Positions 21,513-24,500 of a DNA stretch of 64,000 nt are shown here, piece by piece. A program made the translations under genes and the position numbers. The first letter of the stretch is position 1; every line of letters starts with the position of its first letter. Source of the stretch: Blastocystis sp. Blastoise (taxonomy: Eukaryota; Protista; Bigyra: Opalinata); assembly GCA_039096225.1 (NCBI GenBank), contig JBBPEB010000025.1, forward strand, positions 744,001 through 808,000. Direction: 5' to 3'. The notes below the pieces were generated by a model that saw only the letters and a program-made list of their open reading frames with translations, ran no database searches and was not told the DNA's origin.

Positions 21513-24500
21513 ATGAATTCTAGAATTCTTGCGATTGCAAAGAGTTTGCAAAAATATCAAGTTGGTTTAAGAACTAGCAATGTTTTTCTTCGATCTTTAA
21601 CAACAGCTTCTGTATTCATATTCTATAAAATTGGTATTTAAGTCAATAATATCTATAGATTCGAAGAAATTTGATGCCTGCATTGAGTAGTAGCATCAGA
21701 AATCCTATGTCTATATCAAGAAGATATGCCTCAACATTACATGAAAGTAACAGTATGTATTTAAGAATAATTACCCATTCAATACACAATATATAAATTA
21801 TTATCATATAGTATTCATTGAGAATAAGATTATGCGTGAACAGAATACTAAGAATATGCATATGAAACTTCGTGAACAATACGAATATACTCAAGACCAT
21901 CCTGAAGATGAAAATAGATTTATAGAAACAATTAAAGTATATTTATAAACATTATTATTATAAATCTATATATATATATATATTCATTTATATAGTCCCT
22001 TCTTGATTCTTGTTACTTTACTCAAGTAAATGATCTTTTTGAATTACGACAATCTCGTAATCTTACCTTTGAAGATAAATCTATTTATCGATATCTATTT
22101 ATCTCCTTATTTCTCTCGGGAACACTGTTTGATCTCCCCAAAACACAAATAGAAGATCTCATCCGATTGGTTAATGACCCCTCAATAACCAATCATTTTC
22201 TTCTAGATCAAACAAAAATGCAGTTAGGTATAGAATACTATATACTATTATTATGAATATTATTTATTATATAGGTACTATCAATAATCCTATTGAAATA
22301 AACACGGGAAAACCAAATAATAAACTGATGTGGTTTCTCATCTTCTTATTTGCATTGAGTTTAGCTCTTTCATATACCTCCAACAAACGAGTACCCATGT
22401 TGGATGATAAGTCTTCCTTTGAGCCTGAGCAGAATGTGCGTCTTCGATTTAAGGATGTGAAGGGGATGAATGAAACCGTTAAAGAACTCAAAAAACTCAT
22501 TATCTATCTTCAAGTATATATATATATATATATATATATATATATATATATATATATATATATATATAGGACCCTCAAGCCTATATACGTCATGGATGCA
22601 AACCGCCTGCTGGTGTTCTTCTTACTGGACCTCCAGGTATATATATATATATATATATATATATATATAGGTGTTGGTAAGACTTATTTAGCCCGCGCTT
22701 TGGCTGGAGAAGCAGGAGTTAACTTTTATAATATCTCTGGTATGTATCTATATATATATATATATATATATATATATATATAGGAAGTGAGTTTGATGAG
22801 ATGTATGTTGGTGTGGGCGCAGCCCGAGTTCGAAAACTATTCAAGGAAGCTAGAGCTCATGCTCCTTGTATTATATTTATTGATGAATTAGATGCAGTAG
22901 GGGGTCGACGTAACGAGGACCAATCAAATAACGCCTCCAGAATGACGATCAATCAGTTATTAACCGAAATGGGGGGTTTCAAGGGATCTGAGGGAGTCAT
23001 CGTCATTGGCGCCACAAATTTAAAAAGTGTTTTAGATCCCGCGCTCATTCGTCCTGGGAGATTTGATATGGAAATTAATGTGGGTTTACCTGATGTTCGT
23101 GGACGAGAAGCTATTCTTAAATTACATACAAAGAAAATGCGATTATCGGATTCCGTCGATCTTCGATCTATCGCTCTGATGTTACCGGGCACAACGGGCG
23201 CGGAACTGGCGAATATTGCCAACCAAGCAGCACTCAATTCATTATATGATGGGTCAGTGTTGGTAACGCAAGATCATTTCTATAAGGCTATTGATCGAAT
23301 AATCATGGGAAATGAGAAAAGCGTGGTTATACCCGATACAGTCAAGAAGAATACATGTTGGCATGAAGGAGGTCATGCTATTGTTTCCTGTTTAACGGAT
23401 GGCGCCAAAGGAGTGACGCGGGCAACTGTACTTCCAAGAGGGGATGCATTAGGTATGGTTCAATCAAAAACGACCGAAGAACAAAGCTATCAATATACAA
23501 AGAAAGAAATGCTTGCTATATATATATATATATATATATATATATATATATATATATATATATATATATATATATATATATATATATATATATATATATA
23601 TATATATTAGAATTGATGTATGTATGGGAGGACGAGTAGGAGAAATATTATTAGCAGGGTATATATATATATATATCATATATTTTACATTTTATATACA
23701 TAATTATAGAAATGATAATATGACAGCTGGAGCGTCATCAGATCTTCAACAGGCCACGAACATTGCACGTGCTATGGTAATGAAATATGGAATGACTGAT
23801 TTAGGAATGGAAGTAGTTGATGAGGGTGTAAATCACAACGGTATATATAGTGAGAAGAAGAAAGAGGCCATGGATACCGAGGTCAAACGCATCCTGGACG
23901 ACTCTTTCCATAGGGTATACTCCCTTCTCTGGTGGAAGAAGGCGACACTCAAAAGACTCGCTACGGTAGGCATATATATATATGATTTAATATTATTAAT
24001 ATTATATCATAGTATATCTATATGATTATATTATATATGATTATATTATAATTTTTATATATCTATATAATTATATTCTATAGGCACTATATGAATATGA
24101 GACTTTATCAGGAGAAGAAGTGGAGGATGTTATTCACGGGAAAACGCTTCATCGTCAGATACCCGATCATTATGATGAGGAAGAAGAAGAAGAAGAAGAA
24201 GAAGATATAGTGATAGATGATGAGGATATATATACGAATAAGGCTGCTTCTGAGGGATCTATGGCAGGTTCTGATGGCGGTAATTCTAGTAGAATGAGAA
24301 TGGAAGTGAATAAGGGAGAGAATAATGTGGAATATAAGACAAAGAGTGGTATGGTGAAGATAGATGGATCGAATAAAGGATTAACTTCAAAAGATGTAGA
24401 TGTGATTATTAAACAATTTGAAGAGATTCAACGAGGTCTTTTAGCAGAAGAAAAAAGACTAAAACAAGAATATATACAGGATCGAAATAATAAGAATACT

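Follow-up and report, generated by a model that had tools for sequence, protein, structure and literature searches.

How an intron is recognized when its terminal GT and AG enclose only an alternating TA repeat is the question raised by a 64,000-nt stretch of Blastocystis sp. Blastoise DNA (contig JBBPEB010000025.1, positions 744,001 to 808,000; hereafter the window, with a G+C content of about 26%). An initial annotation had listed seven GT(AT)nAG segments interrupting coding sequence in this window, two of them in a gene for a YME1/FtsH4-like protease. All seven proved exact, with GT..AG ends: five (3459-3514, 22514-22569, 22637-22670, 26677-26732 and 41145-41200) lie on the + strand, and the remaining two (9198-9239 and 9902-9947), which read CT(AT)nAC on the + strand, are GT(AT)nAG on the minus strand. 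As read from the sequence, many short introns of this genome are G(TA)nG alone, and genome-wide both predicted splice sites read as TA repeats (GTATATAT...TATATAG).

TA-repeat introns in YME1 and other genes

The analysis covered 226 kb of the genome, comprising the window, fifteen 10-kb samples and the small nuclear RNA (snRNA) loci, drawn from an assembly (G000) of 33.3 Mb in 34 contigs. Introns were called with our own dynamic-programming gene finder, which scores codons by log-odds learned from long open frames, admits GT-AG introns and adds an A/T-versus-G/C intron term, and which is free of any TA-phase term. Its output over the 226 kb consisted of 70 gene fragments and 221 GT-AG introns; it recovered the YME1 introns that had been read by eye, and at two loci the exon limits given by the HSP70 profile agreed independently with its introns within 1-3 nt. 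Exons were translated and searched singly, and homologue coordinates were compared exon by exon (blastp against FtsH/YME1 homologues, 120 homologues).

The best full-length relatives of the largest YME1 exon are i-AAA proteases, namely plant FTSH4 and sponge YME1, at no more than 54% identity, and the gene is single copy in the genome, which also holds two distant AAA paralogues. The exon and four introns of this gene are as follows.

22514..22569, + strand: pure intron GT(AT)26AG, equal to G(TA)27G, 56 nt, phase 0, between ..IIYLQ and DPQAY..; called by the gene finder, homologues contiguous within 1 residue.
22637..22670, + strand: pure intron GT(AT)15AG, equal to G(TA)16G, 34 nt, phase 1, splitting the Gly codon of Walker A GPPG|VGKT; placed by homologue coordinates.
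22740..22783, + strand: near-pure intron GTATGTATC(TA)17G, 44 nt, phase 1; ..YNIS-G-SEFDEM.. is contiguous in homologues.
22786..23514, + strand: largest exon, 243 codons, encoding the AAA ATPase, the AAA lid and the start of peptidase M41 (Pfam PF00004, 2.8e-28; PF01434, 6.9e-13).
23659..23709, + strand: intron G(TA)8TCATATATTTTACATTTTATATACATAATTATAG, 51 nt, phase 2; contiguous in homologues.

Removal of the introns restores the YME1 reading frame and its motifs, as had been claimed: in several homologues the coordinates are contiguous at every junction, including ..LQ|DPQAY.. and GPPG|VGKT. In homologue P0026, for example, residue 29 is the last of exon 3, the first split Gly is residue 30, exon 4 spans residues 31-52, the second split Gly is residue 53 and exon 5 begins at residue 54. 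Because these coordinates are gapless, the two pure runs and GTATGTATC(TA)17G need exact removal to rebuild ..LQ|DPQAY.., GPPG|VGKT and ..NISG|SEFDEM.., respectively. In these exons, neither TAA nor TAG was seen in frame. The last YME1 exon carries a poly-Asn tract encoded by (AAT)47 (window 24606-24746), and other perfect trinucleotide repeats of the ATA/AAT type reach 296 nt in the sample (L011:5499-5794; L014:7129-7363).

Further pure and near-pure TA-repeat introns are distributed over the window.

3459..3514, + strand: pure intron candidate G(TA)27G, 56 nt; flanking open frames compatible, phase 1.
9198..9239, - strand: pure intron G(TA)20G of a PHD-finger gene, 42 nt, phase 0; the exon next to it encodes the PHD domain.
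9374..9421, - strand: near-pure intron G(TA)6TC(TA)7TC(TA)8G, 48 nt, within the PHD finger; the Pfam PHD match begins at the exon boundary, at profile position 11.
9902..9947, - strand: pure intron G(TA)22G, 46 nt, phase 2; from sequence and gene finder.
26677..26732, + strand: pure intron G(TA)27G of a PP2C/PTC7-like phosphatase gene, 56 nt, phase 0; the downstream exon matches residues 144-250 of PP2C chain 6ae9_A.
41145..41200, + strand: pure intron G(TA)27G, 56 nt, phase 0; called by the gene finder.

The intron at 9374-9421 splits the PHD finger, leaving the first Cys pair in the 16-codon exon upstream. A search of the PDB with one 21-aa exon gave no match. The pure form accounts for 7 of the 221 called introns, six of them in the window, while 24 of the 221 have no G or C between their terminal Gs and 23 consist at least by half of one TA run. 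The earlier statement that dozens more are near-pure holds as well, with G(TA)22TT(TA)7G, G(TA)30TG(TA)6G and GTAGA(TA)16G among others; G(TA)21TTAATAG is a further example of this continuum, as is the split PHD-finger intron. For the pure runs of at least 20 nt with coding flanks, the flanking frames are compatible.

Alternating TA runs of at least 12 nt number 105 in the window and make up 4.0% of its bases. Among the TA-phase runs of at least 20 nt in the 226 kb, 20 of 49 are flanked by G..G or C..C, compared with 8% by base composition (binomial p = 3e-10); because this is far above the expectation, the GT(AT)nAG form is not a chance product of microsatellites. Positions 19677-19808 of the window include a 59-nt AT run. 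Long TA runs occur outside introns too, as shown by a perfect one of 75 nt (L001:473-547) situated about 1 kb upstream of a U1 snRNA gene. Introns of exactly 56 nt occur seven times in the window (3459-3514, 22514-22569, 26677-26732, 41145-41200, 41054-41109, 43084-43139 and 59398-59453). Six of the seven belong to gene-finder models, 3459-3514 being the exception; pure G(TA)27G accounts for four of the seven, and three are impure. Beyond the window, only 1 of 152 called introns has this length.

Splice-site consensus across 221 introns

The 221 called introns have a median length of 85 nt and a mean interior G+C of 6.7%, their interiors being about 92% A+U as against 67% in exons; phases 0, 1 and 2 are represented by 98, 70 and 53 introns, a normal spliceosomal bias. 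The donor consensus begins with G and T and continues with A+3 (.95), T+4 (.90), A+5 (.77), T+6 (.86), A+7 (.75) and T+8 (.74), followed by A (.67) and T (.77), with G at +5 in 8% and G at -1 in 23% of introns. The acceptor mirrors this alternation, with T-9 (.71), A-8 (.59), T-7 (.81), A-6 (.66), T-5 (.89), A-4 (.78) and T-3 (.90) before the final A and G. Thus 146 of the 221 introns (66%) start with GTATAT and 122 (55%) end with ATATAG. Since most introns carry GTATAT.../...TATATAG, the pure introns are the extreme of a continuum, and the view that TA introns form a special class is not supported. With the same alternation as consensus at both ends, the pure introns are two extended splice-site consensus sequences abutting.

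TA runs are concentrated in introns generally and at intron ends in particular. Runs of at least 8 nt take up 22.8% of the bases in introns, as against 4.7% in other non-coding DNA and 0.7% in exons, and 60 of the 108 runs of at least 20 nt lie inside called introns, which form about 10% of the sample. The odds for TpA are 1.44 in introns, and TpA and ApT alike have odds of about 1.4 in introns versus about 1.0 elsewhere. In introns of at least 100 nt (n=88), the share of bases lying in TA runs is 41-47% over the first 10 nt and 26-33% over the last 12, compared with 10% in the middle.

The initial annotation was also right that the TA introns have neither G at +5 nor a CURAY-like branch motif, and they appear to be without a pyrimidine tract of the conventional kind. 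Across the 221 introns, CTAAC does not occur, CTAAT is found in 8 and YTRAY in 68; a YTRAY/CURAY branch site upstream of the 3' splice site is therefore no regular feature, and within a pure TA run it is impossible. A branch motif commonly accompanies U2-type introns without strictly defining them. Upstream of the AG, T is dominant solely at the odd positions (-3, -5, -7 and -9;.71-.90), with A at the even ones. A U12-type identity (donor /RTATCCTT, branch TCCTTAAC) does not agree with the GTATAT donors or with the lack of C in the runs.

The phase distribution also bears on whether the segments are removed from RNA at all. They could instead belong to dead genes, or be excised at the DNA level like the TA-bounded internal eliminated sequences of ciliates, and the runs are indeed bounded by TA. 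However, long intact exons are found in the single-copy conserved genes for YME1, CDC5, the PHD protein and PP2C, the phase bias is that typical of spliceosomal introns, and the in-frame TAA or TAG expected of the reassigned stops common in ciliates was not seen in the exons; we consider both alternatives extremely improbable. A ciliate-like TA-to-TA excision leaving one TA was rejected, as it would leave GTAG in the mRNA, breaking both the frame and the homologue alignment.

Spliceosomal RNAs and a proposed recognition of TA-repeat introns

The snRNAs encoded in the genome are canonical in their pairing regions. U1, present in two copies, starts with AUACUUACCU (86 bits); U2, present in three identical copies and one variant, has GUGUAGUA including GUAGUA (142 bits); and U6 has ACAGAGA (94 bits). 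The suggestion that U1, U2 and U6 might have adapted to UA repeats is refuted by these sequences, in which no compensatory change appears. Of the protein factors that the initial annotation proposed to look for, the helix-hairpin domain of SF1 is encoded; for U2AF, a U2AF-large-like UHM match was found below the family cut-off. The U2 variant (L006:1501-1690; G000:C16:1279160-1279349) has a divergent 5' end in which stem I is not conserved and an intact GUAGUA box, and a partial U2 match lies 1.5 kb from it (G000:C16:1277488-1277616).

Taken together, these are probably ordinary U2-type introns in which the splicing signals have drifted to UA repeats, a contrast between AU-rich introns and GC-richer exons assists recognition, and slippage has filled some introns. 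We infer from the observations above that the segments are spliced, and the branch choice and pairing schemes that follow are proposals of the same kind. In RNA letters the donor consensus is G-U-A-U-A-U-A-U and the acceptor consensus U-A-U-A-U-A-G, and slippage of TA microsatellites at replication, seeded by these consensus ends, could have filled some short introns entirely. Because (TA)n contains no G, such a run offers no cryptic GU or AG, so that the splice sites are its only GU and its first AG. Complementarity of the donor to U1 is confined to +1..+3 (1.0, 1.0 and.95) and +6..+8 (.86,.75 and.74), with.08 each at +4 and +5; canonical U1 would accordingly pair weakly in two parts, at +1..+3 and +6..+8. 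By inspection, the UAU at +6..+8 could also pair with the AUA directly upstream of the U6 ACAGAGA, with +4 joining via AUACA. Any A of the run might serve as branch point, UAU-A-UAU pairing with U2 GUAGUA so that the A is bulged; the computed duplex has -2.6 kcal/mol, versus -5.4 for UACUAAC. The sharp step between AU-rich intron and GC-richer exon may assist recognition, as is known for plant introns.

Several points weigh against this explanation. The predicted duplex of U1 with GUAUAUAU is weak (-4.0 kcal/mol, versus -12.7 for GUAAGUAU), and the alternation persists to +10 and past -9, beyond the reach of U1 or U6. The hairpins predicted for the pure runs (-11 to -44 kcal/mol) would bury both splice sites. 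No transcript-derived protein of the organism was found in any library searched (homologous proteins match the 243-aa exon at no more than 56% identity, and protein representatives at no more than 54%), and both a search of encoding contigs and an exact 26-mer scan of metagenome contigs for the organism's protein were blank. Run X1, with a share of 0.54 of the sampled words and with 0.50 of the 31-mers lying in coding exons, is suggestive of RNA but agrees as well with low-coverage DNA, and it was kept out of the evidence. Furthermore, two TA-run introns in conserved genes are without GT or AG, which a plain GT-AG spliceosome leaves unexplained unless each reflects a 1-base assembly error.

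23517-23607, equivalently 23518-23608, + strand: YME1 (TA)45T segment, 91 nt, with ends TA..AT or AT..TT; removal needed for ..KKEMLA|RIDVCMGGR..
47301..47371, - strand: CDC5/Cef1 intron GTATCTAATATACTC(TA)27TG, 71 nt, with a GT donor and the 3' end TG; the gene finder breaks there.

At the YME1 segment, where the gene finder likewise breaks, neither GT nor AG stands at the required positions, and homologues P0026, P0004 and P0087 are contiguous only when both A and R are kept. The exons neighbouring the CDC5/Cef1 intron match the Pfam families Myb and Myb_Cef; solved CDC5 chains align from KRVKLSLP, two codons past the TA run, and there is no AG in between. Judged from the sequence, the two exceptions would reflect either a tolerance of non-GT-AG ends in introns that form long UA hairpins or 1-nt errors in the assembly: a missing G would turn the YME1 segment into a GT-AG intron at the cost of one residue, and an extra T would explain CDC5.

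The first of these possibilities belongs to a wider proposal, in which splicing is assisted or defined by structure: the (UA)n ends would pair, or the whole intron would form a hairpin, drawing donor and acceptor together much as in the bridging introns of fish and replacing the branch-site and pyrimidine-tract signals, and in the strong form excision would proceed without GU-AG, as it does for nonconventional introns of euglenids. We judge this unlikely, although not without evidence on its side. Terminal stems of at least 6 bp are present in 37% of introns versus 2.4% of shuffled introns, and the pure introns are predicted to fold to single hairpins, from -10.7 kcal/mol (34 nt) to -44 (90 nt), that have G+1 and G-1 at the base of the stem. 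Long introns have TA runs anchored at both ends; the lengths of the 5' and 3' runs correlate weakly (rho 0.23, p 0.004), and runs of at least 7 nt occur at both ends in 28 of the 151 introns of at least 60 nt, against 21.8 expected (odds ratio 2.2, p 0.035). The YME1 91-nt run would be excised exactly as a hairpin bounded by TA..AT, the CDC5 intron has TG at its 3' end, and there are precedents for structure-dependent introns (PMC4691745, PMC3935182, PMC6221363).

The same motif, however, stands at both ends of these introns, so two independent consensus signals would mimic complementarity, and the spliceosome is canonical with nearly all introns GT-AG. U1 binding is normally inhibited when a stable stem covers the 5' splice site, which counts against a structural role. 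Because runs at both ends are limited to those 28 of 151 introns, a bridging stem is possible, but not general. In both non-canonical cases the anomaly is at the end of a long TA run (assembled as 91 and 55 nt), where a 1-nt error would look alike. The earlier idea of a hairpin that may join donor and acceptor has weak statistical backing: the excess of stems and the weak run-length correlation agree with it, but most introns are without a bridging stem. Less probable again is that the (UA)n hairpin is itself the splicing signal, cut at the base of the stem, with a long stem making GU-AG dispensable, for which the (TA)45T segment of YME1 and the GT..TG intron of CDC5 would serve as examples; if true, this would be a structure-defined excision route beside or within the canonical spliceosome, outside Euglenozoa.

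The second possibility, in its general form, is that complex AT-rich introns, or TA runs of other lengths, were collapsed to clean TA runs in assembly or polishing. Four pure runs in the window share a length of 54 nt, six called window introns are exactly 56 nt long (post hoc Poisson p about 0.001), and a single-base error at the end of a run could account for each non-canonical intron. Yet the assembly has 34 contigs, three of the six called 56-nt introns are not pure, and the single TC, TG or TT interruptions in the runs resemble natural microsatellite decay. Moreover, collapse cannot yield a position-specific consensus at both splice sites, and we regard it as a very unlikely source of these introns. 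Collapse at k=55 as a general cause of the four 54-nt runs was rejected: a k-mer ceiling is excluded because the assembly retains perfect trinucleotide repeats as long as 296 nt as well as TA runs that vary widely in length, up to 111 nt.

Apart from the HSP70 loci at which intron calls were compared, the genome has five full-length intronless HSP70 genes that fall into two groups of identical score (recent duplicates), while other HSP70 paralogues have several AT-rich introns.

G000:C25:695280-697094, C16:1451521-1453335, C16:1552281-1554095, C4:1827034-1828857 and C8:407314-409137: intronless HSP70 genes L029-L033.

Comparison with known introns and significance

Among known mechanisms, the recognition of plant introns by UA-richness comes nearest, and the nearest structural precedent is the fish class of (AC)m-(GT)n bridging introns. 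In plants, UA-richness of introns is essential for efficient splicing (PMC3466422). Like the UA-rich introns of flowering plants, those described here have far more A+U than the exons, splice sites at a step in composition and weak branch and pyrimidine signals. Unlike plant introns, they show a strict, phased UA alternation anchored on both splice sites, G at +5 in only 8%, and in some cases a whole intron that is one microsatellite.

In the teleost (AC)m-(GT)n introns, the repeats at opposite ends can pair and bring the splice sites together, and the class is spliced without U2AF2 (Lin et al. 2016, PMC4691745). The present introns may resemble them in having simple dinucleotide repeats at opposite ends that would be able to pair; however, the fish introns combine two different complementary repeats with a normal interior and a normal splice-site consensus, whereas here one self-complementary repeat is the consensus and sometimes the whole intron. 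Co-occurrence of the two arms is also weak here (odds ratio 2.2, p 0.035; rho 0.23, p 0.004). In the nonconventional introns of euglenids and diplonemids, a stem joins the ends and the borders need not be GT-AG (PMC3935182, PMC6221363, PMC12621601). Two candidates only would match this description, the (TA)45T segment of YME1 and the GT..TG intron of CDC5, each of which is also explicable as a 1-nt assembly error; in contrast to the euglenid introns, nearly all introns here are GT-AG and the stems are pure A-U.

Plasmodium falciparum and Dictyostelium have extremely AT-rich genomes, with microsatellite-laden introns, abundant (TA)n and poly-N coding tracts. The microsatellite density of P. falciparum has been described (bioRxiv 10.1101/560516). 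Extreme AT-richness, abundant (TA)n and poly-N coding tracts are thus shared with the present genome. To our knowledge, neither a TA-repeat splice-site consensus nor whole GT(AT)nAG introns have been reported, and a literature search for TA-repeat introns or a GTATAT consensus found no relevant description.

For annotation, the consequence is that this genome will be mis-annotated by gene finders whose training relied on GTAAGT and branch signals. Few intron signals are as widely conserved as +5G, the branch motif and the pyrimidine tract; in this genome a phased UA repeat largely takes their place, while U1, U2 and U6 remain canonical. Should transcripts bear out the junctions, these introns would provide a natural test of the minimal sequence required by a spliceosome (GU, AG and A/U), a means of asking whether structure in the RNA aids the pairing of splice sites, and a view of how microsatellite slippage shapes introns.

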